Sequence record: NC_061448.1
Reading direction: 5' to 3' (one strand)
DNA length: 64,000 nt
Positions 5,581-34,771 of this stretch are shown piece after piece. Numbering within the stretch: the first letter of the stretch is position 1; each line of letters opens with the position of its first letter. Below the pieces are notes generated by a model. It saw only the letters and a list, made by a program, of their open reading frames with translations. It ran no database searches and was not told the DNA's origin. The position numbers and the translations under genes were made by a program.

Positions 5581-7515
5581 ATGGGTATTCAGGTTGGTCG
5601 TCGTCAACTGGGCGGCGCACCCCAAGAGCCTGCGAAGAAGAAACAAAGTTCTCTCGGAGCAGCCTCTTTACCACGCGAGATAGGCAAAGCAATCCGCAGT
5701 GAGAGTTCACGTCGTCACAGTGACTTCGTATCTCAATCTGCGGGTGGCGCAGGAATGGCTGCCGGTAATATGCAAATTGGTACCGTACCCCTTGATATCG
5801 ACTTAGAGCCGATGATGGAAGGTATGGACTATGATGCTGACGACCGACAGCTATTCAACGTCTACCGCGATATGTATCACTTCGACCCAATCTGCGGCTC
5901 ATACGTAGACTTGTTTTCAACGCTGCCATTCTCCGATGTGAGTTTCAGTGGCGCGAAGGACAGTGTGCTTGAGCCGTACTACGAAGTGAACGAACGTCTG
6001 TCACTGACCACCAGTATGCCGAACATCACAACTGATATTCAGGTTACTGGCGCGTTCGTTGGCAGTATGATCTACAACAAAGACCGTAAGAAGTTCATCG
6101 ACCTGATGACGCACCGTTACGACAACATCGACGTAACGCCATTGCCGTTTATCAGTCAGGACCCTATGTTCGAGCTGCGCATCCCTCAGTACGTGAAGTC
6201 TGCTTTCGCTAAAGAAGGTAAACGTATTGACGCGCTGAAAAAAGAGCTGGGCAGTGGGTTCGTTGATAAGTTGATGAACGACACGACGATGGAACTCGAC
6301 CCCATCGGCACAATCTATATCCCACGTAAGACATTCAGCTTTGGCGAAGGTATCTCGGTGTTGCGCCGTGTGTTGCCTATCTGGTTGATCGAAAAGAACC
6401 TGTATCGTGGTACGCTGATTGAGTCTGGTCGTCGTCAACGCGGTATCTTACACGCCCAGCTGGGTGATGGTGATCAGTGGGAACCGTCGCAAGAAGAAAT
6501 GGACTTTATGACCGACCTTCTTCTGTCTGCGGATAGTGACCCGATTGGATCTATCATCACAACCCGACTCGGTGTGAACATCAGTGAGTTCCGTCAAGGC
6601 GGTGACTTCTGGAAAATCACGGACATCTGGGACCAGACTGCTCAATTCAAAATGCGAGCTATGGGTATCAGTGAAGCGTTCCTCAGCGGTGAAGCGAACT
6701 ATGACTCGGGCGCTGCTGGCCTGACGATCTTCGTTGAAGCGATGCGAGCGTTCCGTGATCATCTGACGCGTAAAGTCTACTATGAGAAAGTCTTCCCGCT
6801 TATCAGTATGATGAATGGCCTTGCTGTTCAGCGTAACGGTAAGATCATCAAGAAGAACAATCTCATGGAAGGTGGCCTGACCGAAGTAATGTACAAACTG
6901 AATGACGGCAGCAAGCTGTTTATTCCGAACGTGCATTGGTCTAAGCAACTGCGTCCTGACGTTGACCAAGCGATGATGGAAAACTTACGTGCGATGACTG
7001 AGCTGGGTGTTCCGGTTCCGTTACGTGCTATCGCTGCGGCTGGCGGGTATAACTTCGACCAGATTCTTATGGATCAGGATGAAGACCTCGCAATGCGTCG
7101 CAAGCTGATGGCGTATCGCAAACGTCAGTCTGAAATCGACGCTGAGTTCGCTCCGCCTGAGCCGGGCGCTGGTGGTGAAGGTGATAGCTTTAGTTCGACC
7201 AGTAGCATGTCTGCTGATCTCAAACGTCGCCGTCGTCACGTAGCTGGTATTGGTCTGTCGTCTGCTGTTCTCGGTGGCGAGCCGCGTAAGCTGCTTAATC
7301 GCGACTGGGGTGAGCGTTCTGAAATCTTCGAACTGTCCAAGACAGGTAAGAAGAAGCACGTCTTCCGTCAGTCTGTCGCTAACTCAAAAGCTAACGACCA
7401 GATCTGGAAAGCTGCGAAGAACTACGAAGCCAACAAAACGATGCCTCTTGACAATGGCAAGGTGTCATTCCAGCCGACTGCTCATGAGCTTCGTGCAATG
7501 TCGAGAATCCGTTAA
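5581..7515 (+). CDS. probable portal protein
   Basis: 644 aa, helical, directly downstream of terL; GAGG SD. Call rests on position and size. Confidence 0.65.
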   Translation: MGIQVGRRQLGGAPQEPAKKKQSSLGAASLPREIGKAIRSESSRRHSDFVSQSAGGAGMAAGNMQIGTVPLDIDLEPMMEGMDYDADDRQLFNVYRDMYHFDPICGSYVDLFSTLPFSDVSFSGAKDSVLEPYYEVNERLSLTTSMPNITTDIQVTGAFVGSMIYNKDRKKFIDLMTHRYDNIDVTPLPFISQDPMFELRIPQYVKSAFAKEGKRIDALKKELGSGFVDKLMNDTTMELDPIGTIYIPRKTFSFGEGISVLRRVLPIWLIEKNLYRGTLIESGRRQRGILHAQLGDGDQWEPSQEEMDFMTDLLLSADSDPIGSIITTRLGVNISEFRQGGDFWKITDIWDQTAQFKMRAMGISEAFLSGEANYDSGAAGLTIFVEAMRAFRDHLTRKVYYEKVFPLISMMNGLAVQRNGKIIKKNNLMEGGLTEVMYKLNDGSKLFIPNVHWSKQLRPDVDQAMMENLRAMTELGVPVPLRAIAAAGGYNFDQILMDQDEDLAMRRKLMAYRKRQSEIDAEFAPPEPGAGGEGDSFSSTSSMSADLKRRRRHVAGIGLSSAVLGGEPRKLLNRDWGERSEIFELSKTGKKKHVFRQSVANSKANDQIWKAAKNYEANKTMPLDNGKVSFQPTAHELRAMSRIR

Positions 7516-7850
7516 TGTACAACGTGTCAACGTGTCCAATTGACGGTGAGGAAAAGGTGGTTGTGTATCGCCACCCTATCTTTACCGATTACGGTTTAGG
7601 CTTAAAGATTAATCGCGATGGCGAGATGACAGTTGTAGAATGCAACATCGTCACTGGCGTAATCGACGGTCAGTCTAAGCTGGAAACCATCGCAGATCAC
7701 AGCGCTCCACTTGATGTTCAATTGTGGTGTTTTACGTGCATGGTGACTCTGCGAGAATCTGTAAATAGACAGAGCCTATCATTAGATGCTTCATTCCCGA
7801 ATAACGGGGGCATCGTTTATTACAACCAAAATCAGGAGAGTACATCGTGA
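7515..7850 (+). CDS. hypothetical protein
   Basis: TAATG coupling to the portal stop. Confidence 0.65.
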   Translation: MYNVSTCPIDGEEKVVVYRHPIFTDYGLGLKINRDGEMTVVECNIVTGVIDGQSKLETIADHSAPLDVQLWCFTCMVTLRESVNRQSLSLDASFPNNGGIVYYNQNQESTS

Positions 7851-8233
7851 GTGGATTATTCCCGCATCGCGTTATCGATCAAAAAGAAGGTTTCGTATTC
7901 ATCGTTCAGCCTGCTGACGATAACGATCCTGATGCAGTAGAAGCGGCACAGGAAGTTGAAGCCGTCCTGATAGAAGCGTGGCCGACTGCACCTTCTGAGC
8001 TGACCGTCGAAAACGTGAAAGACCCAGAAGAAGCAGAACTGATTTACGCTGACATTGCGCAACTGCTGGAAGAAGCAGAACGCGAAGAAGCGAAACAGAT
8101 CGTAATCACCAGCGTCGTTGTTGCTGGCAAACTGGCAATCGTCAACTGTATGCTCACCGGTGAGGATCTGGAAGACGAAGATGAAGACGAAGACGATGAT
8201 TCCGTTGAAGCCGACGAAGAAGACTTCGATTAA
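7847..8233 (+). CDS. highly acidic hypothetical protein
   Basis: GGAG SD, GTG start, D/E-rich C-terminus. Confidence 0.75.
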   Translation: MSGLFPHRVIDQKEGFVFIVQPADDNDPDAVEAAQEVEAVLIEAWPTAPSELTVENVKDPEEAELIYADIAQLLEEAEREEAKQIVITSVVVAGKLAIVNCMLTGEDLEDEDEDEDDDSVEADEEDFD

Positions 8234-9932: not shown

Positions 9933-10475
9933 ATGACGGAAAAGATTACGCAGTTGGAGAAATGGTATGATGCGGCGAAAGTCGCATTCAAGATGGGCAC
10001 AGTCAATCCTGATGGTGACGCTGCGCTGCTGTTGGCAATCCATAAACGTCTGGTGAAAGAAGCCGAAGACGCAGGTGACGAAGACACTGTGACCGCAGCT
10101 CGTCTGAATCTGGAAGAGTTCCTTGCAGACTTGCGCAAAGAGCTTCGCATGTACGACCTGATCTGTCGTCGCTTCAACACTGACCTGTACCCGAACATCA
10201 AAGTCGGTGATGACGTCAAAATCTATATCGCGCTCATGGCTCAAACGCCGGGTAGTGCTGTAATGGCAATGACGTACCTGTATCTCGCTCGCTGCTACAC
10301 GCTGCAAGACATGATACTGAACTTTCTCCCGAACGGCTTCCCTGCTCACGATGCTCTCGGTCTTACGTGGAGCATTCAGAAAGGGAACAGTGATGCGTTT
10401 ACCGGAAATCTGGTGGACGATATTGAAACTGTAAATAGCCTGTACAATAAGATGTATAGCTCGGGAGATAAGTAA
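9933..10475 (+). CDS. hypothetical protein
   Basis: GAGG SD, 180-aa ORF. Confidence 0.75.
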   Translation: MTEKITQLEKWYDAAKVAFKMGTVNPDGDAALLLAIHKRLVKEAEDAGDEDTVTAARLNLEEFLADLRKELRMYDLICRRFNTDLYPNIKVGDDVKIYIALMAQTPGSAVMAMTYLYLARCYTLQDMILNFLPNGFPAHDALGLTWSIQKGNSDAFTGNLVDDIETVNSLYNKMYSSGDK

Positions 10476-11068
10476 TGGATTTGTCCGCTATCGGTTACGC
10501 CCCGAAGCAGTTTCGAGTAATCCCCGTTGAGAAGGGCAATCTCGTTACTGACTTCATTCAAGGTAAGTTCCGCGTTATCGGCGTTGAGTGCAACGCTCGT
10601 GGTGCTTACGGTAGTCCTATTCAAAAGAGTATTGCACGTCGCTTCCCGGAAGTTGTGCGCAAGGTCGAATCAATCGACTACGAGCACGAACTGACAATCG
10701 GTAAGACGCACATGATCCGTGTCGGTACTCAATATCGCCGCAATCTGTTTGTTGCTAACATGCACATTGCTCGCGGTTTTGGTTTGGGTCTCAATGGTTC
10801 TTCTGCTGGTGCTCACAAGCCTATCAATCGTTTCAGTGAGAAGTTCCTCACGCGAGCGTTTGAAGACTTGCTGGAGCAGTGCGATAGAGAGAACATTGCA
10901 GTTGACCGGCAGATCGCTATTCAGCGTTTCTATGGCGGACTCGGCGGGGTTTCGTGGGAAGAAGTATGTGTGGTGCTCGACGCTATCTGCGAGAAGTATC
11001 AGTTCAACATGTACGCCTATCTCCCTCGTAACTACAACACTAACTTTGTGCGGGGCGTTGCGCAATAA
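10475..11068 (+). CDS. macrodomain protein (TARG1/DarG-like)
   Basis: EKGNLV, ECNARGAYGSPIQKSIARRFPE and FYGGLGGVSWEEV resemble GDL / NCxGxMGxGIA / GCGLGGLxW. Confidence 0.65.
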   Translation: MDLSAIGYAPKQFRVIPVEKGNLVTDFIQGKFRVIGVECNARGAYGSPIQKSIARRFPEVVRKVESIDYEHELTIGKTHMIRVGTQYRRNLFVANMHIARGFGLGLNGSSAGAHKPINRFSEKFLTRAFEDLLEQCDRENIAVDRQIAIQRFYGGLGGVSWEEVCVVLDAICEKYQFNMYAYLPRNYNTNFVRGVAQ

Positions 11069-12233: not shown

Positions 12234-13004
12234 ATGAGCAACGTTGATAAAACAATGCCTGTCGGCCGCTGGGAGTTCAATGAGCCAGTTGCTTCTGTGT
12301 TCGATAACATGCTGCAAAACTCAATCCCCTCCTACGACCGTATGCGTGATCTGACCTATCGTCTGGGTCGTCAGTTCGTAACTCCCGGTACTGCTATCGT
12401 TGACCTCGGTGCGTCACTCGGCCGCGCTATCGAACCGTTCTGTGCTGAGTTCGGTGAGTATCGTTACCATCACGCAGGTGACCGTCCTATTCCTGACGAA
12501 GAAGTCGGTAACCTGTACTGCTGCTACGAAGTCGCGCCAGCAATGCTTGAGCGTCTGCGTGAAAACGAAGTGCTGAAACAGGCTAAAGCGAAAATCAGTA
12601 GCGAGTCGCTGGTGGAAGTAGACACGTTCCGCTTCGACGAACAGGTTGAGTGTTCACTCATTCTGTCTGTGCTTACTCTCCAGTTCACGCCGATTGAACA
12701 TCGTCAGCACATTCTGGAGAAAGTGTACGATAGCCTTGAGAAAGGCGGCGCGTTCATCCTCGTTGAGAAAGTTCTCGGTGATGACAACTTCCTCGACCGT
12801 CTGCTGGTAGATACGTACTACGGCATGAAAGGCGATAACGGTTACTCGCAAGAAAGCATTGCGACGAAACGTAAAGCGCTTGAGGGCGTACTCGTACCTG
12901 TCAAAGCCGCGTGGAACGAAGAACTGCTGCGCAAAGCTGGCTTCGACCGCGTTGAATGTTTCTACCGCGATCTTAACTTCGCTGGATGGATCGCAATTAA
13001 GTAA
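12234..13004 (+). CDS. cmoA: carboxy-S-adenosyl-L-methionine synthase (CmoA homolog)
   Basis: Aligns by eye end to end with E. coli CmoA: WEFNEPVASVFDNMLQNSIPSY, DLGASLG, LTLQF, GGAFILVEK, NGYSQESIATKRKALEGVL, LRKAGF, LNF. The Arg199-equivalent is retained (12870-12872). Confidence 0.88.
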   Translation: MSNVDKTMPVGRWEFNEPVASVFDNMLQNSIPSYDRMRDLTYRLGRQFVTPGTAIVDLGASLGRAIEPFCAEFGEYRYHHAGDRPIPDEEVGNLYCCYEVAPAMLERLRENEVLKQAKAKISSESLVEVDTFRFDEQVECSLILSVLTLQFTPIEHRQHILEKVYDSLEKGGAFILVEKVLGDDNFLDRLLVDTYYGMKGDNGYSQESIATKRKALEGVLVPVKAAWNEELLRKAGFDRVECFYRDLNFAGWIAIK

Positions 13005-13011
13005 GGGAAGT

Positions 13012-14277
13012 ATGATGAAAGTAAACGGGCGTATCTTAGCAATCGTGCCTCACAAGACTCTTCTGGACAGAACCAAGTCTGGTGTTGGTGCGTACATTGA
13101 TGGACTCGAAGACTATGGCTTCTGCGACTTCATCACTGACGGTGAAAACAGCTCTGTTACCAAGAGCCAGTGGTTTAACTACGGTGATACCACTCTGAGC
13201 GACGGGTACAAAGTTGGTCACATTCAAAGTGCTCTGCTCGAAGCGCTTGATCGCACTCCGTATCGTGCAATCATCTGTAGCACCTACGAAGCTGTCGAAG
13301 CTGCTGTCGGCCTTGGGCTGCCTAAGATTATGCCTGTTTACTACCGTTCGCATAACAGCTTCCTGTTGACGCAAGACCTGAACGGACTTGGTGCTGAGAA
13401 GATGCACCGTGCGCTGCTGCAAGCTCCTGTTACAGGTCTGCGTATCTTAGCGAACTGCGACTCGACTGCGCGTGTGCTGTCTGAGATTTATAAAACTGAG
13501 GCTGCTGTCGCGTACAACGCATTCAGTGTATCAGACTACAATCCACCAGCGAAGCGTAAACCCTCGCTGCTGATTATCTGTCGCTACGAAAAGGTTAAGC
13601 GTCCTACGTTTGCTGCGCGTATCGCTGCTGCGTCTGGTCTGCCTGTTCGTGTGATGACCGGCTCTGACCGTCAAGTCAAGAGCTGGGAGAAAGAGCTTGC
13701 TGATGCAGGCGTGAAAGATTACCAAGTCGTTAGCGGTCTGTTCGGTGACGAGAAGATGGCGTTCATCGGACAATGTACCGTAGCGCTTTCGTGTGCCGAA
13801 GTAGAGTCATTCGCTAACGGTGTACGTGAGACTATCCCGTACTGCCCTACGTTCGTTGTGCAAACTTCTAAGTACGATTGGGCGCGAGACTATACGCGCT
13901 TCTGCTCTGAGAACAAGCACATCCACATTCGCACTGTTGATCGTGTGACTGCGAAAGAGGTGGAAGAACTCGGCAACGAGATTGCTTACTGGGCTTGCAC
14001 TAAGTACCTGACAAAAGCTGAACGTACTACGCTGCTGACCGAATGGTGCAAGCGCGTAGACAAAGGCTGGGCTGACTTCATGAAGAATGCAGTCGTGCCC
14101 GATGACGGCAAGCCGATGAAGACCGACCTGTCGAAAGAACTCGAAGAAAAAGGCGTAGTAGACTGGTCGAAGACGCAGACGTTAATGCGTACTGTAAAAG
14201 CTATACACAAGTGTCATGCTCGTATGGGCCTGACGTTCGATGGCACCAAAATCAAAACGAAAGGGAAGAAGAAATGA
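13012..14277 (+). CDS. GT-B fold glycosyltransferase (GT4-like or phage DNA alpha-glucosyltransferase-like)
   Basis: SGVGAY near the N-terminus, ICRYEKVKRP, ESFANGVRE (ExFG...E-like). Start corrected to ATG 13012. Confidence 0.7.
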   Translation: MMKVNGRILAIVPHKTLLDRTKSGVGAYIDGLEDYGFCDFITDGENSSVTKSQWFNYGDTTLSDGYKVGHIQSALLEALDRTPYRAIICSTYEAVEAAVGLGLPKIMPVYYRSHNSFLLTQDLNGLGAEKMHRALLQAPVTGLRILANCDSTARVLSEIYKTEAAVAYNAFSVSDYNPPAKRKPSLLIICRYEKVKRPTFAARIAAASGLPVRVMTGSDRQVKSWEKELADAGVKDYQVVSGLFGDEKMAFIGQCTVALSCAEVESFANGVRETIPYCPTFVVQTSKYDWARDYTRFCSENKHIHIRTVDRVTAKEVEELGNEIAYWACTKYLTKAERTTLLTEWCKRVDKGWADFMKNAVVPDDGKPMKTDLSKELEEKGVVDWSKTQTLMRTVKAIHKCHARMGLTFDGTKIKTKGKKK

Positions 14278-15308
14278 ACGTGATTGGTGATATCTATAAT
14301 ATTCCGCAACCGTACGCGATGTTCTGTGGTAACGCCACGACGAAAGCAATGGCGAAGATCACTGCCGGTATGGTTGAGTGGGCGTCAGAGAAAGTCTGCT
14401 GTGTAGTTGACGACGCTAACAACCTGTTCCCTGAAATGCCTCACGTTGAAATTCGTGACCTCGATAAGACCGATGCAGAAACTCTGGTTATCGGGTTTGC
14501 CCCGTTCGGCGGTCAGATTAACGAAGACATTGATCGCGCTATTCGCTCTGCGCTGTCTCGTGGCCTGAACGTTGCTGCTGCGCTGCACGTTAAGCTGGCA
14601 GACAATGCTGAATACTGCGCTCTGGCTAATCAGTATGGAGTGAAGCTGTATGACTTCCGCCACCACCCTGAGCAATATCCTCTGGGCACTGGTCTGCCTC
14701 GTGCCGGTGTTCGTGTTCTTACTGTTGGTACTGACTGTTCGTGCGGTAAGAAATACACTGCACTCGCACTGACCAAGAAGCTGACCGAGCTGAAACAGAA
14801 AGCTGTGTTCTGCGCTACAGGCCAAACGGGTTTCCTGATTAGCGGTCGTGGCATCAACAACGACACTGTGGTTGCTGACTTCCTTGCTGGTGCTGCTGAG
14901 TGGCTGTCACCTGCTGACGAAGAAGCTATCTATCTGATTGAGGGTCAAGGTGCGCTGCGTCATCCAGCTTACACTGGTGGCAGCATGAGTCTGATTGCTG
15001 GCTCTCAGCCCGACGCTCTCGTTGTCTGCCACACTGTTGGCCGCAACTTCATGCTGAACACCGAGCGTGAGATCAACCTCGTTGACGAGATCGCTGCTAA
15101 CATCGACGCTGCTGCGATGCACGACTGGTACCCTAAAGTTGTTGGTATCAGTATCAATTTCTGCGAAGTGAAGATGACGAAGAAAGAGCGTGAAGTATAT
15201 CTGCGTAGTCTTTCTTTGAGCAGTGGCTACGTGGCTTTCGACCCACAAGCCGGCGGTGAAGAGTTCGACCGCGTTGCTCACTACATCACGACGCTGAAAC
15301 GCCGATGA
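14274..15308 (+). CDS. DUF1611 family protein (DgcN-like, P-loop)
   Basis: VGTDCSCGKKYT, ATGQTGFLI, ADFLAGAAEWL, IEGQGALRHPAY, GSQPDALVVCH. Confidence 0.85.
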   Translation: MNVIGDIYNIPQPYAMFCGNATTKAMAKITAGMVEWASEKVCCVVDDANNLFPEMPHVEIRDLDKTDAETLVIGFAPFGGQINEDIDRAIRSALSRGLNVAAALHVKLADNAEYCALANQYGVKLYDFRHHPEQYPLGTGLPRAGVRVLTVGTDCSCGKKYTALALTKKLTELKQKAVFCATGQTGFLISGRGINNDTVVADFLAGAAEWLSPADEEAIYLIEGQGALRHPAYTGGSMSLIAGSQPDALVVCHTVGRNFMLNTEREINLVDEIAANIDAAAMHDWYPKVVGISINFCEVKMTKKEREVYLRSLSLSSGYVAFDPQAGGEEFDRVAHYITTLKRR

Positions 15309-16249
15309 AAGTCTTAATCGACCGTGCCGCGTTAGCGAGTAATGCGGCCTATTTAAACTCACTCGCTCCGTCCATGATTCCGGTTGTGAAAGGTAATTTC
15401 TACGGACATGGTTTAGATTGCGTGACAGCATTCGCCTTAGGGTTTGAGGTGCTCGCAGTTCATAGCGACCGCGAAGCACTTGCGCTGCGTCAGTTAGAAC
15501 TCGACAACACGCTGTTAGTTCTCGGCGGCACCGACAGTCTCATGTGGAATACAGTGCCTGTGCTGAACGCAGAGCAAGTCGGTACGTATGGAGGCCGATA
15601 CGCTGTGTTTGCTGATTGGGGTTGTCGTCGTATCAACGTCAAACCTGAACAGCTTACGCATCCACCAGCGTTGATTCTCGTTCACTCGGATGACTATCGT
15701 GTGCCTGTGTCTGAGTACGACGCTAACGAGATCGCCCAGCGCTACAACGTGCCTCTGTCTATGCTGTCTGTTGGTTCGAGCATGAACGTGCTTAATCAAT
15801 ACGCACCGAAGTTGAAGCCGCGTGTTGGCATGGCGCTTACCGGATATAGTAGCGATGAAACTGTGAACGGTAATTTGTGCGTAGCGAAGACAGTGCTTGC
15901 TCGTATCTGCGATAAGCTGGATGCGGGCCGAGTATTCGGTTACGGTGCATTAGTACCGAACTGCGCGGACAAGTTCTTGTACTCGATTGATGTGGGTTAC
16001 TACGACAACCTGTATCAGTCTGACAACAACACACCTGTGCATTGCCCTGACGTGCCACACGCGCAAGTCACGTTGCTCACAGGCGTTGCCCACGCAATCA
16101 GCATGAACCATGCCTTCGTATTGTCAGATACTGAGCTACCGTTTGACTCCGATATTGAACTACTCGGACCTAACGTTCGCGCAGACTATCTGGCTAAACT
16201 TCACGGAACAACAACTGCGAATATTTTAAGGCTGGGTAATCATGGCTAA
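15305..16249 (+). CDS. alr: PLP-dependent alanine racemase-like enzyme
   Basis: VVKGNFYGHG (PLP Lys29), PRVGMALTG, GYG, VGYYD, ISMN (vs VCMD). Confidence 0.82.
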   Translation: MKVLIDRAALASNAAYLNSLAPSMIPVVKGNFYGHGLDCVTAFALGFEVLAVHSDREALALRQLELDNTLLVLGGTDSLMWNTVPVLNAEQVGTYGGRYAVFADWGCRRINVKPEQLTHPPALILVHSDDYRVPVSEYDANEIAQRYNVPLSMLSVGSSMNVLNQYAPKLKPRVGMALTGYSSDETVNGNLCVAKTVLARICDKLDAGRVFGYGALVPNCADKFLYSIDVGYYDNLYQSDNNTPVHCPDVPHAQVTLLTGVAHAISMNHAFVLSDTELPFDSDIELLGPNVRADYLAKLHGTTTANILRLGNHG

Positions 16250-17111
16250 ACACGTTTTGCGCAAGCTGTTTGAACAGCACGTTAAAGCAGAGGTCAAAGA
16301 CAACAAGGTGGCAGTGCTGCTGTCCAGTGGTCTTGACGGACTCGTTAGCGGGCTTGCTGCCCATGACTTAGGAAAGAAGGTACACGCCTTTACTTTCCAG
16401 ATGGGCGACAACGAAAGTTTCGACAGCAAACACGCGCGTAAAGTCGCAGAGAAGATGGGCTGGGAGTTCACGCTTGTGAAAGTACCGACGTCTGACAGCG
16501 CTATCGTGCAGGGTTGGAAAGCGCTTCACGCGAAGTACCGCTGTGTTAAGAAGCGTGACTATGAGTGTGCATATCCTATGGTGTATTGCTACAAGGCAAT
16601 CAAGGATGCAGGTTACAAGTACGTACTGAGCGGCCTTGTCGCTGATGCTTACTTCTGTTTTGCGCGTAACACTCACATCGCTAAAATCAGCGGCCCGCAT
16701 AGCGTACTCGAAAAGTTCGACGAGTATCGCAAAGCATACTGGGCACCGTGGTTCAAGAACGGTAAGAAGTCTCTCGGCGTTGACGGTTATAACCCAAGCG
16801 GTATGCTGCAACACGAAATGCTGTGCGACTCTTTCGGCCTGACCCACGTTAACCCGTGGCTGATGAAGAAAGTCCATGACTACTTCATTGGTCGTTCGTG
16901 GCAAGAACTAAATCAACCCAAGCAGAAAATGCCAATAACAGAAGCATGGGCTGATCACATCGCGGTTGTAGGCCATCGCCCGCATCGCGGTTATCAAACA
17001 GAAGCTGGAGTACCTGCGTACTTCGAACGCTTACTGGATAATCCTGAGATCAACTTCAACGGTCGCAAGCGTGTTATGGATCTTGCGCGTGATTGGTCAA
17101 CGAGGACTTAA
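16242..17111 (+). CDS. asparagine-synthetase-like ATP-dependent amide ligase lacking the glutaminase domain (CmoY-like candidate)
   Basis: PP-loop VAVLLSSGLDG, FTF, D...ARKVAE, YVLSGLVADAYF; only 289 aa with no Ntn domain. Confidence 0.75.
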   Translation: MAKHVLRKLFEQHVKAEVKDNKVAVLLSSGLDGLVSGLAAHDLGKKVHAFTFQMGDNESFDSKHARKVAEKMGWEFTLVKVPTSDSAIVQGWKALHAKYRCVKKRDYECAYPMVYCYKAIKDAGYKYVLSGLVADAYFCFARNTHIAKISGPHSVLEKFDEYRKAYWAPWFKNGKKSLGVDGYNPSGMLQHEMLCDSFGLTHVNPWLMKKVHDYFIGRSWQELNQPKQKMPITEAWADHIAVVGHRPHRGYQTEAGVPAYFERLLDNPEINFNGRKRVMDLARDWSTRT

Positions 17112-17112
17112 T

Positions 17113-17733
17113 ATGTTTGTACACATCATTGACGGCAGTGTAGGCGGAAACTACGTAGCGGAGAAACTGCGTGAGGCAAATATCAATTGCCGCGTTCACT
17201 CTCCAAACAACCCACGTGTTCGTGCTGTTCATGCCCCGTACCCTTCTCTTTCGATGGGTCACACAGAGCAGGAGATTGACCATCATATCAGTCAAGTGCT
17301 CGGTACGTTTCGTGGTCTGTTCTTGATTAGCAGCTACGTGGGTTCGCTGGTGGCTCGCAACATGATTGACCAATGTGGCCAGAGTCACAACATCATTTAT
17401 TGCGATGATCTGCAATGTGGATCTATGCCTGTTGTTGCTTCCTCGATTTCTGTAAATGTATATCAGAAGCAACGACGACTCGGACGTATCGCTGGTCGAC
17501 TCAAGCACTTCGATGTTGACCACGAGTTCATTGTCGCAGACAAGGCTGTGCGTTTCGCGGCAGGGTCAGAGTTCGATGAACACGATGCACGTAAAGAACT
17601 GGACGACACGCCTAAGTTCTTATCGAGTCCGTCAATGATTGTTGCTGCACACAAACTCGGTGTGAAGCGCAGCATGTATCACAACTATGCAGGTCTGGTG
17701 CGAGAGTTCCTTGAAAAGCGCCAGCAGCAATAA
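17113..17733 (+). CDS. possible divergent Asp/Glu racemase (MurI)-fold protein
   Basis: N-terminal HIIDGSVGGNYVAEKL resembles MurI IGVFDSGVGGLSVL; the catalytic ACNTA motif is not clearly retained. Confidence 0.4.
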   Translation: MFVHIIDGSVGGNYVAEKLREANINCRVHSPNNPRVRAVHAPYPSLSMGHTEQEIDHHISQVLGTFRGLFLISSYVGSLVARNMIDQCGQSHNIIYCDDLQCGSMPVVASSISVNVYQKQRRLGRIAGRLKHFDVDHEFIVADKAVRFAAGSEFDEHDARKELDDTPKFLSSPSMIVAAHKLGVKRSMYHNYAGLVREFLEKRQQQ

Positions 17734-20806: not shown

Positions 20807-21649
20807 ATGACCGTAATCAGTCCTATTCGTTATCAGGGCAATAAGCGAAGCCTTATCCCTCTTATTCTCGAACACACACCAAGCGTACAAGACTGTCCGC
20901 GTATGGTTGATGTGTTTGGCGGTAGCGCTACTGTCTGTGCGAACATGCCGCAGAAGTTTCGCGTCTACAACGAACTGAGTCCTCAGGTGTTTGAGATCGT
21001 CAAGATGCTTGTCGAGCAAGACCCGAAGAAAACTCTAGGTCAAGTCAAGCGTCTGGTGAAGCACTGGTGTCTGACAAACAGCAACGAAGAAAACTACGAT
21101 GCGTTCCGCGAAGTCGTCCAGAAGAAGCGAACGCCTATCTTGCATTACGTTGCGCACAGACACGCGCACTCGAACATGCTGCGATTCAACCAGCAGGGTA
21201 TCTATAACGTAGGCTTTGGCGATCGTGGTCTGATTGGTAAGTTCGATGAACTCGCCGATGAACTCACAACGTTTCACAGTCACATGCAGGGCGTTCACCT
21301 GACGAACATGAAGTACGGTAAGCTACTCGGTCGTCTAGGCAAACAACTGGACTGCAACACGTTCTGTTACTTTGACCCGCCTTATCTTGCGAGCGGTGCG
21401 ATGCAGTATGGCAAGTGGACTGAAAGCAATGAGCGCAACCTGCTTGCTACTCTCGAACATCTCAATCGTCTTGGCGTACCGTGGATGTTGAGCAACGTGA
21501 CAGAGCACCGACACTTCTCAAACGATTTGTTGAAGCGCTGGTTAAAGAAACACGCGACAACCGTGCTCTATCCAAACAAAAGCTATGCGATGAACAACGG
21601 TCAGAGTGGCTCGCATGGTACTGTTGAAATTCTGGCAATGAACTATTGA
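20807..21649 (+). CDS. dam: DNA adenine methyltransferase, T4 Dam-like (D12 class)
   Basis: YQGNK, VDVFGGS, HSNMLRFN...FG, YFDPPY. Confidence 0.88.
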   Translation: MTVISPIRYQGNKRSLIPLILEHTPSVQDCPRMVDVFGGSATVCANMPQKFRVYNELSPQVFEIVKMLVEQDPKKTLGQVKRLVKHWCLTNSNEENYDAFREVVQKKRTPILHYVAHRHAHSNMLRFNQQGIYNVGFGDRGLIGKFDELADELTTFHSHMQGVHLTNMKYGKLLGRLGKQLDCNTFCYFDPPYLASGAMQYGKWTESNERNLLATLEHLNRLGVPWMLSNVTEHRHFSNDLLKRWLKKHATTVLYPNKSYAMNNGQSGSHGTVEILAMNY

Positions 21650-24152: not shown

Positions 24153-24658
24153 ACGAATTACCGATGAACCTCGATCAAGCTGAACACATCATGGCCAGTG
24201 TGTTTACGCTTGCTGGTGCGTCGAAGTCAAAGCGTCGTGCTACTGCTGCGATGCTCATTCATTTCCATCACGGCTTTCCGACTGTAATCAGTAGCGGCGT
24301 GAACGGTACACAGCCGGGCGCGAGCAACGTCATGGAGAACGAAGACCTGACGCTTTCGCTCGACACTGTTATTCATGCTGAGGTGAATTGTCTCAATCGC
24401 ATGGAAGAACACAGCATGTGGGCAGAAGAAGAGGACATCTTGTTCTGCACTGATTCGCCGTGTCCGAACTGTCTCGCTGACCTCGAAGCTGAGGGCGTTA
24501 AGACAGTTGTGTATGCGCGTGAGTATCGCCTGACTGATCATCTCGACGCATCGAAGATCAAGATGTTCTGTCTCGATATGGACAGCGTTGTCCGACGTAT
24601 GCAGCACGGTATCGACCGCATCAATGACGTAATCGCAACAACACCAGCGTCTAACTAA
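24137..24658 (+). CDS. dCMP deaminase (zinc-dependent cytidine deaminase family)
   Basis: SGVNG, HAEVN, SPCPNC. Confidence 0.85.
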   Translation: MRCNLNELPMNLDQAEHIMASVFTLAGASKSKRRATAAMLIHFHHGFPTVISSGVNGTQPGASNVMENEDLTLSLDTVIHAEVNCLNRMEEHSMWAEEEDILFCTDSPCPNCLADLEAEGVKTVVYAREYRLTDHLDASKIKMFCLDMDSVVRRMQHGIDRINDVIATTPASN

Positions 24659-28526: not shown

Positions 28527-28876
28527 TGCCTCCTGTAATTCGTTTCAACGAGCAAACCCGCGAACTGCTGAGAAAGACATTCGGCATTGATTCACCTTTC
28601 ATTGTCGTGCGTCGTGAGCGCATCATCGAAGACGATAAGCCTTTCGGTGAGCGTGTCTATTTGAACAACGGCATTTACACCGTGACCGTACCTAACGTAC
28701 AGGGTCTCGATCTCGGCGATAAGCTGTATCTCGCAGAAGATATGGAAGTGTATGAGTGGCACCCGCACTTCGGTCTTCATCCTACCATCTATCCTTCTGT
28801 AAGCAACAACCAGAAGACTGCGCTCTCATTCGGCCTTCATCCTATCATCTATCATAAAGACAGTCGGAACTCTTAA
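28526..28876 (+). CDS. hypothetical protein with a short internal repeat
   Basis: FGLHPTIY / FGLHPIIY. Confidence 0.7.
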   Translation: MPPVIRFNEQTRELLRKTFGIDSPFIVVRRERIIEDDKPFGERVYLNNGIYTVTVPNVQGLDLGDKLYLAEDMEVYEWHPHFGLHPTIYPSVSNNQKTALSFGLHPIIYHKDSRNS

Positions 28877-31935: not shown

Positions 31936-32640
31936 ATGGCAAAAACTGCTATCAAAGCAAAGGACGGAAAAAAGAAAGACGGGTTGAAGTTTGATCTCAA
32001 AAAACTCAACTCAGTCGCTCAACTGAAAGGCGCTGACTATAACCCGCGTTTCATTACAGACAGTCGCTTGAAAGCACTCGAAGGTTCTTTGGGTAGCTTC
32101 GGCGACTTGTCTGGTATCGTGTTTAACAACAACGTCAAATCCGGTGTGTTGATCTCAGGCCACCAGCGTCTGAAATCTATCGACGGTTGGAAGACTCGTA
32201 TCGAGATCCAAAAGACCGTTGACAAACACGGCACTATCGCTCTGGGCTACATCCACGCGACGCATCCGAAGAAGTCTGATAAAGTGATCAGCATTCCTCT
32301 GCGTATCGTGAACTGGACCGATAAGAAAGCGGAGTACGCAGCGAACATCGCAGCGAACGCCCACGGCGGTGAGTTCGATAACAAGAAGCTCGCCAAGCTG
32401 GTGGAAAAACTCGATCTCAACACAATCAAGCCGCAGTTACTCGGCCTTGACCCGTTAGAGATTCGCGGTCTGCAACAAAAGCTGAAAGTACAGGCTGTTG
32501 TGCAAGACGACAAACGCGCTGGCAAGACTACCGGCCAGATGAACGGTAGTACCGGTAAGTTCAATGAGTACAACGCTGACGATGTTGGCGATACTCTGAA
32601 CTGCACCTGCCCGCGCTGTGGATTTAAGTTCGAGGGATAA
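31936..32640 (+). CDS. ParB/Sulfiredoxin-like N-terminal domain protein with a C-terminal zinc ribbon
   Basis: YNPRFI, SLGSFG, ISGHQRL, NAHGGEFD, CTCPRCGFKF. Confidence 0.8.
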   Translation: MAKTAIKAKDGKKKDGLKFDLKKLNSVAQLKGADYNPRFITDSRLKALEGSLGSFGDLSGIVFNNNVKSGVLISGHQRLKSIDGWKTRIEIQKTVDKHGTIALGYIHATHPKKSDKVISIPLRIVNWTDKKAEYAANIAANAHGGEFDNKKLAKLVEKLDLNTIKPQLLGLDPLEIRGLQQKLKVQAVVQDDKRAGKTTGQMNGSTGKFNEYNADDVGDTLNCTCPRCGFKFEG

Positions 32641-32641
32641 T

Positions 32642-34771
32642 ATGATCATCAAGCCGCCTACGATGAAGGAAATCAACAAGCTGGATAAACCCTGGCGTGG
32701 TATGAGTTTCTTCGCAGGTTGCGGTGGTTCTTCTACCGGTCACAAGATGGCCGGTATCAATATCTTGCTGAGTAACGAGTTTGTTGACCCAGCAAGAGAG
32801 TCATACGAAGCGAACCACCCGACAACGAAAGTGCTGCCTCATGACATTCGCCGCCTCGACCCCGGTAAGCTGTTACGTTACTGCGGTCTGGATAAAGGTG
32901 AACTTGATTTACTTGACGGTAGTCCTCCTTGCTTTACCGAAGACACTATCATTCATACAGCAGACGGCATGAAGTTCATCTCGGACATGAACGTCGGCGA
33001 CAGAGCGATGACCAGTGTCGGGCAGTATTACCCTGTATACGACACAATGGTCAGACCGTATGTCGGTACGATGCACAAAGTCGAAACGCTGATCAGCAGC
33101 AACAACGCAACGCCTGAGCATCCGTTCTTTGTTAGACGTGCGCTGGCGGAAGGCGGTTACTCTGATCCGTTCTGGTGTGATGCGAAAGACGTGCAAGAAG
33201 GCGACTTGCTTGGCACTCCTCGCGTTACGCCTGATCAACAGCCGGGCGTGTATTACGATCAGATTGCGCAACTGCCGAAGATGATTCAGCAGTGGGTGTG
33301 CATCCCTGAGTTCTGGTGGATGGTAGGACACTGGTGTGATCGCGGTTCAATCGAAACAGTTAGCGGCGTTGAAGTCGTTAGCTTCGAATCGCACACCAGC
33401 CTTGAAAACGCGATGATTGAGCAGGCGTTTGACGCGCTTAAACTCAGTAGCCTGAATCGCATTGACACGATGACTGCGCAACGCAAAACGTTCCGTACTG
33501 TTATCGACGCAGAGCTGGTGCAGTTCTTACGCCGCTTCGTCAGTCAAGGCAACAACACGTTCTCCCGTCGTCTGCCAGCAATGATGTTCCACATGAACAC
33601 CGAGTTGAAACAACAATTCATTCTCGGTTGTGCGGGGCATGACTATGTGACTGCGATGGGCACTGGCCTTGCTATCACATCAAACAGCAAACGCTTCCTG
33701 CTTGAGCTTAACTACCTGTGCTGTTCTGCATTCAATCGTCCTCTGTTTGACGGAATGATTTGGGGAGATGTTTACTTCGGTAGTCCACTGACGCCGCGCG
33801 AGCGTAACAGTTCGCGTGAGCACATCGGCTACCTGTTCTTGCAGGACGAGCACAACTTCTTCCACGAGTTCAGCGATAGCGATTCACATCTCTGGACCGA
33901 AGTGATTGAGAACCTTGCGTATCAGGCAACGTGCGACGTGTACAACTTCTCTGTTGAAACAGACGAAACGTATGTGGCTAACGGTGTTGTCGTTCACAAC
34001 TGCAAAGGCTTCTCGACTGCTGGCGTGAAAGAAGAAGGCTGGGGCAAAGAAGTTAAGTACAGCGACAATAAATATCAGCAGGTAGATGACCTGTTCGATC
34101 AGTATTGTCGTATGCTGCAAGGTATGCAGCCTAAAGTGTTCACTGCGGAAAACGTTAGTGGTCTTGTGAAGGGAATCTCGAAAGGGTACTTCCTTGAGAT
34201 CATGAAGACGTTCGACAAGCTCGGCTACTACGTGCGAGCACCGATGTTGAATGCGTGTTGGCTCGGTGTACCGCAGTCGCGTGAGCGTATCATCTTCATG
34301 GGTGTGCGCAAAGACGTAGCACATGCGCTTGGTTATAAAAATGCGCGTGAAGCTGTGCCTGATGTTATCCCGTGCGATACGCAAGCCTTCCTCGGCGATG
34401 CGTTGCCTCACATCTTACGATACAAGACGACGCAGAAAGACCTGATCAAGTATCTGCCCTCAGTTAACGGACCGATGCCAACGATTACAGCGTCTGATGC
34501 AATCGCGTATGAAACAGCGCGTTTCTCGTCTGCTGGGTTTATCGAAGACAACAAAGGTCATCGCCGTAAACTGACTATCGACGAACTGCTGGTAGTTTCG
34601 GGAATGCCGTCTGACTATAAGCTGGTTGGCAAATTCGAAGAACAGTGGGAACGTCTTGGTCGTGTCTGTGTGCCAGCAATGACACACGCAGCATCGAAGG
34701 CTTTCATCGAACATATTCTTTTGCCTTACGCGAAGAAGAAAAAGAAAAAGCCAGGCGATATATTTAAGTAA
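32642..34771 (+). CDS. C5-cytosine DNA methyltransferase-fold enzyme with an intein; predicted carboxymethyltransferase (CmoX-like)
   Basis: Motif I FAGCGG, IV SPP-C-KGFS after splicing, VI ENV, VIII QSRERI, IX RKLTIDE...GMPSDY, X LGRVCVP (Arg at the canonical GN Asn). Confidence 0.88.
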   Translation: MIIKPPTMKEINKLDKPWRGMSFFAGCGGSSTGHKMAGINILLSNEFVDPARESYEANHPTTKVLPHDIRRLDPGKLLRYCGLDKGELDLLDGSPPCFTEDTIIHTADGMKFISDMNVGDRAMTSVGQYYPVYDTMVRPYVGTMHKVETLISSNNATPEHPFFVRRALAEGGYSDPFWCDAKDVQEGDLLGTPRVTPDQQPGVYYDQIAQLPKMIQQWVCIPEFWWMVGHWCDRGSIETVSGVEVVSFESHTSLENAMIEQAFDALKLSSLNRIDTMTAQRKTFRTVIDAELVQFLRRFVSQGNNTFSRRLPAMMFHMNTELKQQFILGCAGHDYVTAMGTGLAITSNSKRFLLELNYLCCSAFNRPLFDGMIWGDVYFGSPLTPRERNSSREHIGYLFLQDEHNFFHEFSDSDSHLWTEVIENLAYQATCDVYNFSVETDETYVANGVVVHNCKGFSTAGVKEEGWGKEVKYSDNKYQQVDDLFDQYCRMLQGMQPKVFTAENVSGLVKGISKGYFLEIMKTFDKLGYYVRAPMLNACWLGVPQSRERIIFMGVRKDVAHALGYKNAREAVPDVIPCDTQAFLGDALPHILRYKTTQKDLIKYLPSVNGPMPTITASDAIAYETARFSSAGFIEDNKGHRRKLTIDELLVVSGMPSDYKLVGKFEEQWERLGRVCVPAMTHAASKAFIEHILLPYAKKKKKKPGDIFK
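32930..34000 (+). mobile_element. 357-aa intein inserted just before the catalytic Cys; degenerate LAGLIDADG-like region
   Basis: Block A CFTEDTIIHTADG, block B ATPEHPF, relics MVGHWCDRGSI and FILGCAGHD, blocks F/G VYNFSVETDETYVANGVVVHN, +1 Cys. Confidence 0.92.

Follow-up and report, generated by a model that had tools for sequence, protein, structure and literature searches.

Gene content and organisation of the cluster

The analysed window is a stretch of 64,000 nucleotides from the record NC_061448.1, the source of which is Erwinia phage pEa_SNUABM_1 (Alexandravirus), a jumbo phage. An earlier note on this DNA had reported four open reading frames with overlapping or near-abutting junctions, and these plus-strand frames match the RefSeq calls gp018–gp021 of NC_061448.1. 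The features considered here are as follows.

12234..13004, + strand: gp016, CmoA-like carboxy-S-adenosylmethionine (Cx-SAM) synthase
13015..14277, + strand: gp017, probable GT-B (GT4-like) glycosyltransferase, present only in some relatives
14274..15308, + strand: gp018, DUF1611/DgcN-like putative D-amino-acid N-acyltransferase
15305..16249, + strand: gp019, PLP enzyme of the alanine racemase family, short at 314 aa
16242..17111, + strand: gp020, CmoY-type ATP-dependent amide ligase with a PP-loop and without a glutaminase domain
17113..17733, + strand: gp021, Asp/Glu-racemase-fold protein without conserved cysteines
31936..32640, + strand: gp050, ParB-like by RefSeq annotation only, directly upstream of CmoX
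32642..34771, + strand: gp051, intein-interrupted CmoX-type cytosine-C5 carboxymethyltransferase

The junctions from gp017 to gp021 consist of overlaps of 4, 4 and 8 nt followed by a 1-nt gap, and the pairwise dN/dS values of the six cluster genes range from 0.02 to 0.20. The cluster consists of genuine, closely spaced genes that evolve under purifying selection. The order of the last four is DUF1611, Alr-like, ligase and MurI-like; the two racemase-fold genes flank the ligase, as had been described, but they do not flank DUF1611, which precedes both.

CmoA, CmoX and the probable carboxymethylcytosine core

In the recently discovered CmoA/CmoX/CmoY pathway, a carboxymethyl group is placed on cytosine in phage DNA and an amino acid is then joined to it, and the biochemistry described includes the 5cxmC-glycine amide (PMC12783734). 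The gp016 protein matches the CmoA model TIGR00740 with an E-value of 4e-43 and 147.8 bits, while the biochemically validated SpCmoA reaches only 115.6 bits on that model, and the two proteins share 31% identity (E 5e-28). Conservation of gp016 across all related jumbo phages amounts to 75–96%, and CmoA is the first gene of the cluster in every relative. Both RefSeq and PHROG label gp016 as a 'tRNA methyltransferase'.

The gp051 gene is located 15 kb downstream of the cluster, and CmoX is thus nonadjacent in the pEa_SNUABM_1 genome. The protein contains PF00145 and Hint/intein domains and is divided into an N-extein (32642–32929), an intein of 357 aa (32930–34000) and a C-extein (34001–34768). 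Its best match in the PDB was 8yf3 (SpCmoX), with an E-value of 5.7e-53 compared with only 7e-15 for M.HaeIII, and the spliced protein is 40.7% identical to SpCmoX. The SPPC motif is intact as GSPP/C, the catalytic Cys being the +1 residue of the C-extein, and the motif ERLGRV keeps the equivalent of SpCmoX Arg350, the carboxy-SAM arginine that replaces the motif-X Asn. An intein-bearing CmoX was found in 50/50 Erwinia/Dickeya records. The ParB-like label of the upstream gene gp050 obtained no support from Pfam or NCBIfam searches; ParBc proteins are frequent companions of CmoX (PMC12783734).

The amide ligase gp020

The gp020 protein matches the Asn_synthase family PF00733 (E 6.5e-15), and no glutaminase domain was detected in it by the Pfam domain search. 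It is 34% identical over 276 aa (E 1e-51) to SpCmoY, a validated 5-carboxymethylcytosine:glycine ligase whose substrate is achiral glycine and which requires no helper enzyme (PMC12783734). The PP-loop residues S28, G30 and D32 of gp020 are invariant among CmoY variants. The protein is basic (pI 9.3) and carries an insertion of ~20 residues relative to SpCmoY.

Gene neighbourhood in relatives and the variable slot

In two contigs (L112 and L113) the neighbouring genes differ, yet CmoX, DUF1611, Alr-like, CmoY and CmoA occur as five contiguous genes, and the CmoX found there carries the motifs SPPC and GRAVPP. The identity of these proteins to those of the window is 56% for DUF1611, 51% for the Alr-like protein, 77% for the CmoY ligase and 42% for CmoA. 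This five-gene contiguity is decisive for the association of the Alr-like and DUF1611 proteins with the CmoA/CmoX/CmoY pathway.

No significant HMM match was obtained for gp017, which is a basic protein (pI 8.9). All of its sub-threshold HMM matches were glycosyltransferases (E 0.13–0.6 in the PDB and 0.12 for Glyco_transf_4 in Pfam), and an analysis of language-model features gave a score of 0.98, with 193 features shared with viral and cellular GT4 clusters. It is probably a GT-B (GT4-like) glycosyltransferase, an assignment that we treat as a lead and not as proof. The content of the equivalent slot varies among relatives, comprising a 2OG-Fe oxygenase in Y3, a glycosyltransferase with or without Alr, or divergent ligases. 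As a pattern, such swapping of apparent tailoring genes is the combinatorial one typical of hypermodification clusters.

The DUF1611 protein gp018 and the alanine racemase-like protein gp019

Both DUF1611 domains were recognised in gp018 (DUF1611_N, PF17396, E 4e-17; DUF1611_C, PF07755, E 7e-49). The DgcN-like character proposed in the earlier note is borne out by a match to PDB 7xrj with an E-value of 2e-56 and by 292 bits on the NCBIfam model NF041892 (DgcN), a score that lies under the equivalog cut-off of 480 bits. The protein is acidic (pI 5.55). In the phage database, DUF1611 is restricted to 34 Erwinia/Dickeya records; a gp020-type ligase adjoins it at every locus examined. AD1-type phages possess DUF1611 together with this type of ligase but carry no racemase. 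The bacterial DUF1611 gene has an enolase-type (MR_MLE) racemase as a neighbour in 4/4 metagenome loci tested.

The gp019 protein belongs, as had been claimed, to the PLP-dependent alanine racemase family with the lysine intact. It matches Ala_racemase_N (PF01168, E 6e-11), and the NCBIfam alr and vanT models match it in both its N- and C-terminal parts, although with 24–37 bits it misses the alr/dadX/vanT equivalog cut-offs of 168–600. The PLP-binding lysine K29 lies in VVKGNFYGHG (consensus VxKxNxYGHG), is invariant in six homologues and aligns with K34 of E. coli Alr. In the alanine racemase family (PF01168 plus PF00842) the second catalytic base is Tyr265' (G. stearothermophilus numbering) of the C-terminal beta domain, and an Arg faces the pyridine nitrogen. 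The family-invariant residues R173 and Y213 (FGYG) of gp019 align with E. coli Alr R209 and Y255, in an alignment at ~26% identity. The ESM Atlas model (pTM 0.87) superimposed on alanine racemase models with a TM-score of 0.87 over 308/314 residues. By alignment, Ala stands at the carbamylated-lysine position and in place of the entry-way Tyr (E. coli AYEL), and the MD motif reads MN; these changes hint at a substrate range different from or wider than that of alanine racemase. The protein is acidic, with a pI of 5.5.

The rarity of such genes in phages, which the earlier note had stressed, was confirmed with E. coli Alr as the query, which matched 32/50,697 phage records, 8 of them from the pEa_SNUABM_1 clade. 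Among the matches listed outside this clade, most resemble bacterial sequence or unannotated fragments.

The MurI-fold protein gp021

Structure prediction of 17113–17733, on which the earlier note had let its reading depend, yielded the Asp/Glu racemase fold. The AF2 model, built on a 25-sequence alignment, had a pLDDT of 92.3 and a pTM of 0.88, and the best 45 matches in a Foldseek search of the PDB were all Glu, Asp or allantoin racemases (E 1e-5, TMq ≤0.63). In VIA-align, Z-scores of 13.9–8.1 were obtained for 11 racemase-superfamily chains, the next value being 7.8, with 181–185 of the 206 residues aligned; comparisons with AFDB and Atlas structures agree on the same fold. No sequence match to any family was found (Pfam with 11 members and E ≤10; PDB), and hhalign against E. 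coli MurI aligned just 18 residues with a probability of 0.7%.

The invariant residues of gp021 are D7, S74, S78, D86, S172 and Y192, and no invariant Cys occurs across the 25 family members. Ser74 and Ser172 would correspond, judging by the order and spacing of the motifs, to C92 and C204 of E. coli MurI. With invariant Ser at the expected catalytic sites and no invariant Cys, a canonical two-base racemase is unlikely. In our view gp021 does not act as a second racemase; it would be a non-canonical representative of this superfamily that serves as a ligand-binding partner or else has altered chemistry.

Comparison with known systems

The closest counterpart is the CmoA/CmoX/CmoY system of Synechococcus phage S-B43, with which pEa_SNUABM_1 shares homologues of all three proteins and the occurrence of the CmoA and CmoY genes in one cluster. 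The S-B43 pathway has three genes only and uses glycine. Unlike there, DUF1611 always accompanies the ligase here, and pEa_SNUABM_1 adds the Alr-family racemase, the GT-B-like protein and the MurI-fold protein; its CmoX has an intein and lies 15 kb off, and its ligase is basic with the ~20-residue insertion.

With the DgcN-DgcA system of D-glutamate catabolism (NF041892; 7xrj), gp018 shares the two-domain DUF1611 architecture and a racemase gene as partner. The partner here is of the PLP-dependent Alr type and not of the enolase superfamily, and the context is DNA modification. To Alr/DadX and to the broad-spectrum and serine racemase (VanT) relatives of fold-type III, gp019 is linked by the PLP lysine motif, the catalytic Tyr, the pyridine-binding Arg and the fold, but it is ~45–70 residues shorter. 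The resemblance of gp021 to MurI and the Asp/Glu/hydantoin racemases (PF01177) comprises the two-domain alpha/beta fold, an FDSGVGG-like motif near the N-terminus whose Asp is invariant, and a set of four motifs in matching order and with matching spacing; gp021 is ~50 residues shorter and lacks HMM-level similarity.

The same logic is found in thymidine hypermodification (5-hmdU kinase, amino-acid:DNA transferase), where a reactive handle at pyrimidine C5 receives a free amino acid that is tailored combinatorially by PLP enzymes, acetyltransferases, oxygenases and others (PMC8989533). In the present case the base would be cytosine, the handle a carboxylate instead of a phosphorylated hydroxymethyl group, and the enzyme families different.

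Proposed pathway and alternative explanations

Given a CmoY-homologous ligase, CmoA at the start of the cluster and a CmoX in the phage, the module most likely serves DNA hypermodification rather than general D-amino-acid metabolism, and the cluster most likely covers the steps of ligation and tailoring in a cytosine hypermodification pathway. We consider it likely that the gp016–gp021 genes and gp051 form a Cx-SAM-dependent pathway of the CmoA/CmoX/CmoY type, with tailoring by gp018 and gp019 as proposed below.

Judging from homology to characterised enzymes, gp016 would make carboxy-SAM, spliced gp051 would carboxymethylate the C5 of cytosine in phage DNA to 5cxmC, and gp020 would adenylate the 5cxmC carboxylate and form an amide with an amine, most likely that of an alpha-amino acid. 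Gene association, catalytic residues and charge suggest PLP-dependent racemase activity of gp019 towards the free amino acid, whose D-form it would probably supply to the pathway; on the same grounds, DgcN-like gp018 would N-acylate the same or a related D-amino acid, and GT-B-like gp017 may glycosylate the DNA-borne adduct. Charge enters as a split between basic proteins (CmoX, CmoY and GT-like) and acidic ones (CmoA, DUF1611 and Alr-like); the acidity of SpCmoY makes this a weak argument. In the case of a diamino acid, one amine would stay free for ligation after acylation by gp018. Once an amino acid is linked by its alpha-amine, a DgcN-type N-acetyltransferase has no group left to acetylate, and the order of the steps is therefore speculative. 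As the earlier note suggested, the putative product may be neither D-Ala nor D-Glu but a different D-amino acid. A more specific and rather doubtful proposal is that virion DNA of pEa_SNUABM_1-type phages carries 5cxmC amidated with a D-amino acid from the phage PLP racemase, the adduct being acylated and/or glycosylated and gp021 working with the ligase.

Tailoring could also follow ligation: in an amino acid attached to DNA by its side-chain amine, the alpha-amine and carboxylate would be free, and gp019 would epimerise or otherwise PLP-transform it before N-acetylation by gp018. We regard this as unlikely, as the active site of the Alr fold is buried at the dimer interface and suited to small substrates, and gp018 and gp019 are acidic (pI 5.5), whereas the pI exceeds 9 for the phage's CmoX and CmoY, which act on DNA. 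It would nevertheless agree with the translational coupling of the gp018 and gp019 genes to the ligase, with the acetylation of the alpha-amine of D-amino acids by DgcN-type enzymes (per the name of NF041892), and with thymidine hypermodification, in which PLP enzymes and acetyltransferases act directly on DNA-appended amino acids (PMC8989533).

A further alternative, which we find quite improbable, places gp021 alone outside the pathway, as a catalytically dead MurI mimic directed against the host that titrates a partner or ligand of MurI or modulates DNA gyrase. Some bacterial MurI proteins do inhibit DNA gyrase. The gene is missing from the L112/L113 cluster and from SNUABM_7-type phages, and its link to the pathway may therefore be mere inherited gene order; the protein is 74–78% conserved beside ligases just 25% identical to gp020, has no invariant Cys and is mildly basic, compared with the acidic E. 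coli MurI. Against this, gp021 and the ligase gene abut or overlap, both here and in several distantly related phages, and gp021 was found only in phages carrying CmoA and a CmoY-type ligase.

The earlier note had read the locus as a free-standing D-amino-acid module, having missed the CmoA, CmoX and CmoY context. Such a module would comprise two racemases, a D-amino-acid acetyltransferase and a ligase, would make or consume a D-amino acid or a peptide containing one in order to take over the host or manipulate its cell wall, and would have nothing to do with DNA; this has little probability. Against it stand the homology of the ligase to CmoY (E 1e-51), the place of CmoA at the head of the cluster in every relative, the position of the DUF1611, Alr-like and ligase genes in L112 and L113, enclosed by CmoX and CmoA, and the lack of conserved cysteines in the gp021 family. 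In its favour are the confirmed racemase folds of gp019 and gp021, the DgcN-like nature of gp018 and the bacterial pairing of DUF1611 with an enolase-type racemase of D-Glu catabolism, as seen at the four loci mentioned above. Least probable of all is an RNA target, in which CmoA and the ligase would modify tRNA or other RNA (as bacterial CmoA does for cmo5U34) and the accessory enzymes would tailor it: PP-loop enzymes often modify tRNA and the database label of gp016 points that way, but a CmoB homologue was absent from the genes examined, and the phage C5 DNA methyltransferase homologue has the Cx-SAM-binding Arg and SpCmoX as its best structural relative. The nearest characterised relative of the ligase likewise acts on DNA (PMC12783734).

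The cytosine hypermodification pathway as such is already known; with the racemase-like, D-amino-acid-acyltransferase-like and Cys-less MurI-like additions found here, the DNA of these phages may bear a new base. If the proposal is true, this would be, as far as we know, the first nucleobase modification containing a D-amino acid, and gp021, as a Cys-less protein of the MurI fold, would represent a functionally new branch of the racemase superfamily.

Organisation of the gene block

The genome of Erwinia phage pEa_SNUABM_1 (NC_061448.1, Alexandravirus) is 267 kb long; the DNA analysed is its initial 64 kb, and the coordinates used here are also those of the genome. The genes reported in the earlier note at 14274-17733 were found as described, four closely packed genes on the plus strand, with gp016 and gp017 lying upstream. 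The genes of this block, together with the distant gp051, are as follows.

12234-13004, gp016, CmoA-like carboxy-SAM synthase
13015-14277, gp017, probable GT-B/GT4-like glycosyltransferase, overlapping gp018 by 4 nt
14274-15308, plus strand, gp018, DUF1611/DgcN-like protein
15305-16249, plus strand, gp019, Alr-like PLP protein of 314 aa
16242-17111, plus strand, gp020, PP-loop ligase
17113-17733, plus strand, gp021, protein with a predicted MurI fold
32642-34771, gp051, CmoX-type C5-methyltransferase with an intein of 357 aa at 32930-34000

The successive junctions from gp017 to gp021 are overlaps of 4, 4 and 8 nt and a final gap of 1 nt between gp020 and gp021. Pairwise dN/dS among four related phages was between 0.02 and 0.20 for six of the six genes gp016-gp021, which shows that all of them are under purifying selection. 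A scan of the block revealed no promoter- or terminator-like signals above chance that would divide it, and PADLOC returned nothing meaningful on this DNA.

Homologues of CmoA, CmoX and CmoY

In Synechococcus phage S-B43, carboxy-SAM is made by CmoA; CmoX, which is homologous to C5-methyltransferases and bears Arg350 and an SPPC motif, carboxymethylates cytosine in DNA, and CmoY, an asparagine-synthetase-like ligase, joins glycine to the carboxymethylcytosine in an ATP-driven reaction (PMC12783734, December 2025). A single end product, the glycine amide, was shown in that work, and other ligase clusters were predicted to use unknown amines. Erwinia, DUF1611, racemases and inteins are unmentioned there, and the literature search found no other paper that connects them.

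The gp016 protein scored 147.8 bits against TIGR00740, a model on which the validated phage enzyme SpCmoA scores 115.6 bits, and judged by its sequence it is a CmoA homologue. The gp020 protein is of the asparagine-synthetase PP-loop type without a glutaminase domain. With SpCmoY it has 34% identity across 276 residues (E 1e-51) and the PP-loop residues in common. The gp020-type ligases differ from SpCmoY in having some 20 inserted residues, located around WFKNGKKSLGVDGY (16242-17111 compared with L007 4884-5699), and in their PP-loop, which reads SSGLDG instead of SGGVDS. They are also unusually conserved across distant phages, with 77% identity versus 42-56% for the adjoining genes.

The best solved relative of gp051 is by far SpCmoX (8yf3, E 5.7e-53, versus 7e-15 for M.HaeIII). 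The intein is inserted exactly before the catalytic cysteine (SPP/C...HN/C), so that the cysteine of SPPC is the +1 residue of the C-extein, and the conceptually spliced protein has 40.7% identity to SpCmoX, with the arginine preserved (ERLGRV). An intein-bearing CmoX is present in all 50 of the 50 Erwinia/Dickeya phage records of the clade, with 56-100% identity over the full length, while the homologue in phage contig L112 is intein-free.

CmoY-like ligases were also noticed in further jumbo phages, Pseudomonas phage PaBG (KF147891.1, 127002-129856) and Yersinia phage fHe-Yen9-02 (OR620964.1). In PaBG the ligase has a CmoX-like methylase some 1.5 kb away, so a CmoA/X/Y-type pathway probably occurs in a wider range of jumbo phages.

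Candidate tailoring proteins gp017, gp018 and gp019

The gp018 protein carries both DUF1611 domains (E 4e-17 and 7e-49). Its likeness to DgcN, claimed in the earlier note, is borne out by a score of 292 bits against NCBIfam DgcN, which is under the 480-bit equivalog cut-off, and by the match to PDB 7xrj (E 2e-56).

The match of gp019 to Ala_racemase_N is confined to residues 5-77 (E 6e-11), and NCBIfam alr models match its C-terminal part as well. The racemase fold that had been proposed for this protein is upheld by its ESM Atlas model (pTM 0.87), which superposes on alanine racemase models with a TM of 0.87 over 308 residues. Three residues are invariant in an alignment of gp019, five homologues and E. 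coli Alr: the PLP lysine K29 (VVKGNFYGHG), R173, which faces the pyridine nitrogen, and the second catalytic base Y213 (FGYG). By the same alignment, at 26% identity, gp019 differs from E. coli Alr at three sites that would correspond to the carbamylated lysine, to the tyrosine of the entry-way (AYEL in E. coli, TANIL in gp019) and to the MD motif (MN in gp019).

No significant HMM match was obtained for gp017; its weak matches, below significance, were every one a GT-B glycosyltransferase, and language-model features group it with viral GT4-like clusters (0.98).

Such genes are unusual in phages, as had been supposed: E. coli Alr matched 32 of 50,697 phage records, eight of them from this Erwinia/Dickeya clade, and E. 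coli MurI matched 22, none from Erwinia or Dickeya phages. Most of the other Alr-matching records listed resemble bacterial contigs or unannotated fragments.

Predicted fold of gp021

Sequence relatives of gp021 were not detectable beyond a small phage family, and an exhaustive search of 1.8 billion representatives returned five clusters. Pfam and PDB profile searches gave no match, even using a profile, and the link to MurI failed at the sequence level by hhalign against E. coli MurI, global hhalign, pairwise alignments and an internal-repeat test. A genome scan for MurI yielded only sequences at least 87% identical, of no use for building a profile. The AF2 model computed with 17 close homologues was unusable (pLDDT 44), and it was the addition of remote homologues that gave a usable one (25 sequences, including members 22-30% identical; pLDDT 92.3, pTM 0.88).

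In the Foldseek search of the PDB, each of the best 45 matches of this model was a glutamate, aspartate or allantoin racemase (E 1e-5 to 2e-3, highest TM 0.63), and the AlphaFold DB clusters gave the same families. VIA-align, which does not depend on Foldseek, ranked eleven racemase-superfamily chains at the top, with Z of 13.9, 13.6 and 13.3 for MurI, 12.5 and 11.4 for aspartate racemase, 10.7 for allantoin racemase and 9.3 for hydantoin racemase; the chain that came next, an unrelated one, had a Z of 7.8. The best ESM Atlas match was a PF01177 cluster (TM 0.68), and independent BFVD models of the homologues from Erwinia phage Y3 (TM 0.94) and SNUABM_5 (TM 0.79) agree with the gp021 model. 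The predicted fold of gp021 is thus the MurI fold. An alpha/beta hydrolase, suggested by language-model features, was rejected, as hydrolase models reached a TM of at most 0.51 against 0.68 for the racemase cluster and a Z of 13.9 for MurI.

The earlier note had taken gp021 for a second putative racemase and named absence of the Asp/Glu racemase fold from 17113-17733 as one refuting outcome. Structure prediction found that fold, but the catalytic cysteines are missing: no cysteine is invariant among the 25 sequences of the family, in which D7, L19, L63, R67, S74, S78, D86, G89, S91, S172 and Y192 are. Four motifs, counted by hand from the MurI sequence, share order and spacing between the two proteins.

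Motifs paired between gp021 and E. coli MurI
gp021 IIDGSVGG (D7); MurI FDSGVGG (D28)
gp021 ISSYVGS (S74); MurI ACNTAS (C92)
gp021 VASSISV (S110, S113); MurI LATRGTV (T135, T138)
gp021 FLSSPS (S172); MurI LGCTHF (C204)

In the model, S74 and S172 both stand at the start of a helix, immediately after a strand, and we infer that they are the equivalents of the MurI catalytic cysteines; pairwise sequence alignments left the mapping of the catalytic positions unsettled. Whichever mapping is used, a conserved two-thiol mechanism is ruled out for the family. Possible roles for the protein are to bind a ligand as a partner of the ligase, to catalyse a changed chemistry or to act on the host as a mimic of MurI.

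Gene association in related phages

The region between the conserved genes gp015 and gp022 was compared among related jumbo phages.

Genes between gp015 and gp022 (GT, glycosyltransferase-like gene)
SNUABM_1, SNUABM_17, SNUABM_3: CmoA, GT, DUF1611, Alr, CmoY, gp021
AD1, Alexandra: CmoA, DUF1611, CmoY, gp021
SNUABM_7: CmoA, GT, DUF1611, CmoY, 84-aa ORF (L008 5508-5762) replacing gp021
SNUABM_2, SNUABM_35: CmoA, ligase only 25% identical, gp021
Y3: CmoA, ligase, 2OG-Fe(II) oxygenase (L020 6271-6909), gp021
SNUABM_5, metagenomic contig: still more divergent versions of the ligase and gp021

The final bases may differ in phages that have other genes between the ligase and gp021 or gp022. In the metagenomic jumbo-phage contig L006, a 196-aa protein of unknown type (7399-7989) occupies the slot after the ligase.

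DUF1611 occurs in 34 records of the phage database, all of this clade, and adjoins a gp020-type ligase in every locus examined; racemase and GT-like genes stand beside this pair in some phages. A scan of genome contigs for phage-type DUF1611 found none, and a metagenome scan found one phage-type locus together with bacterial DgcN-like loci.

The most informative association is that of two distant Alr-like homologues (48-51% identity), located in contigs L112 and L113, whose surroundings are different (DnaG primase, Acb1, sigma factor, RecA). There, CmoX, DUF1611, Alr-like, CmoY and CmoA genes are contiguous, with identities of 56% for DUF1611 (to gp018), 51% for the Alr-like protein, 77% for CmoY and 42% for CmoA; this CmoX has SPPC and GRAVPP and no intein. 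The contiguity of the five genes links both DUF1611 and the racemase with the carboxymethylcytosine pathway and shows that this core can do without gp021 and the GT-like protein.

Bacterial DUF1611 homologues (36-43% identity to gp018) have an enolase-superfamily (MR_MLE) racemase gene directly 3' in four of the four loci tested, all on metagenome contigs (L123, L126, L135 and L141); two of these loci also have a gene for a hexapeptide-repeat transferase on the upstream side. Given this DgcN-DgcA arrangement, the pairing of DUF1611 with a racemase recurs in the phage, although with a racemase of a different kind, the Alr type.

Proposed pathway

The most likely reading of the 14274-17733 module is that it provides ligation and tailoring in a DNA hypermodification pathway of the CmoA/CmoX/CmoY type. 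The earlier note had proposed a D-amino-acid module with two putative racemases flanking the ligase; its racemase folds and DgcN likeness stand, but the CmoA/CmoX/CmoY context was missed and the second "racemase" is without catalytic cysteines. By homology to characterised enzymes, gp016 would produce carboxy-SAM, spliced gp051 would form 5-carboxymethylcytosine (5cxmC) in DNA and gp020 would then join 5cxmC to an amine, probably an alpha-amino acid, as an amide.

In the supply branch that we favour, gp019 would convert an L-amino acid into its D-form, gp018 would acylate a D-amino acid and gp020 would attach the product. Ligation via the alpha-amine would leave nothing to acetylate, which implies a diamino-acid substrate or another order of steps. 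Alternatively, gp018 and gp019 may tailor an amino acid already attached to DNA, as in thymidine hypermodification, where PLP decarboxylases and acetyltransferases tailor DNA-borne amino acids (PMC8989533). The computed pI is basic for the proteins with a known or expected action on DNA, spliced CmoX (9.1), gp020 (9.3) and gp017 (8.9), and acidic for CmoA, DUF1611 and the Alr-like protein (5.0-5.6). This weakly suggests small-molecule substrates for gp018 and gp019 and is the ground for favouring the supply branch; as SpCmoY is acidic too, it is a weak indicator.

Other genes

In all relatives the Cmo cluster is immediately preceded by a conserved gene, gp013 (10475-11068). It matches PHROG 335 ("phosphatase", E 4.5e-27), and its AD1 orthologue is annotated as O-acetyl-ADP-ribose deacetylase (macro domain). 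A long thymidylate-synthase-family protein, gp046 (28876-29979), has 367 aa on a profile of 266 positions and therefore contains insertions; gp036 (24164-24658) is a dCMP deaminase. The pyrimidine nucleotide metabolism of these two might bear on DNA base composition. A Dam-like D12-class N6-adenine DNA methyltransferase, gp030 (20807-21649), is found in every relative with 52-98% conservation, so the DNA of this phage probably has another modification that is independent of the first.

Significance

The CmoA/CmoX/CmoY pathway is already known; undescribed is the enlarged form in which an intein splits CmoX and DUF1611, an Alr-family racemase, a GT-like protein and a Cys-less MurI-fold protein are added. 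Among the ligase clusters predicted to use other amines (PMC12783734), the pEa_SNUABM_1-type cluster is a specific example from phages in culture, and its ligase is always accompanied by a DgcN-like enzyme. Since the phages and their hosts are in culture, its chemistry is open to direct test, and AD1, Alexandra, SNUABM_7, SNUABM_2 and Y3 are natural "knock-out" relatives for assigning chemical steps to genes. Site-specific labelling of DNA is a possible use for the gp020-type ligases. Such assignments would extend known DNA chemistry, perhaps as far as D-amino acids and glyco-amino-acid adducts, would give the DUF1611 family another physiological role and would define, within the glutamate-racemase fold, a Ser/Ser member.
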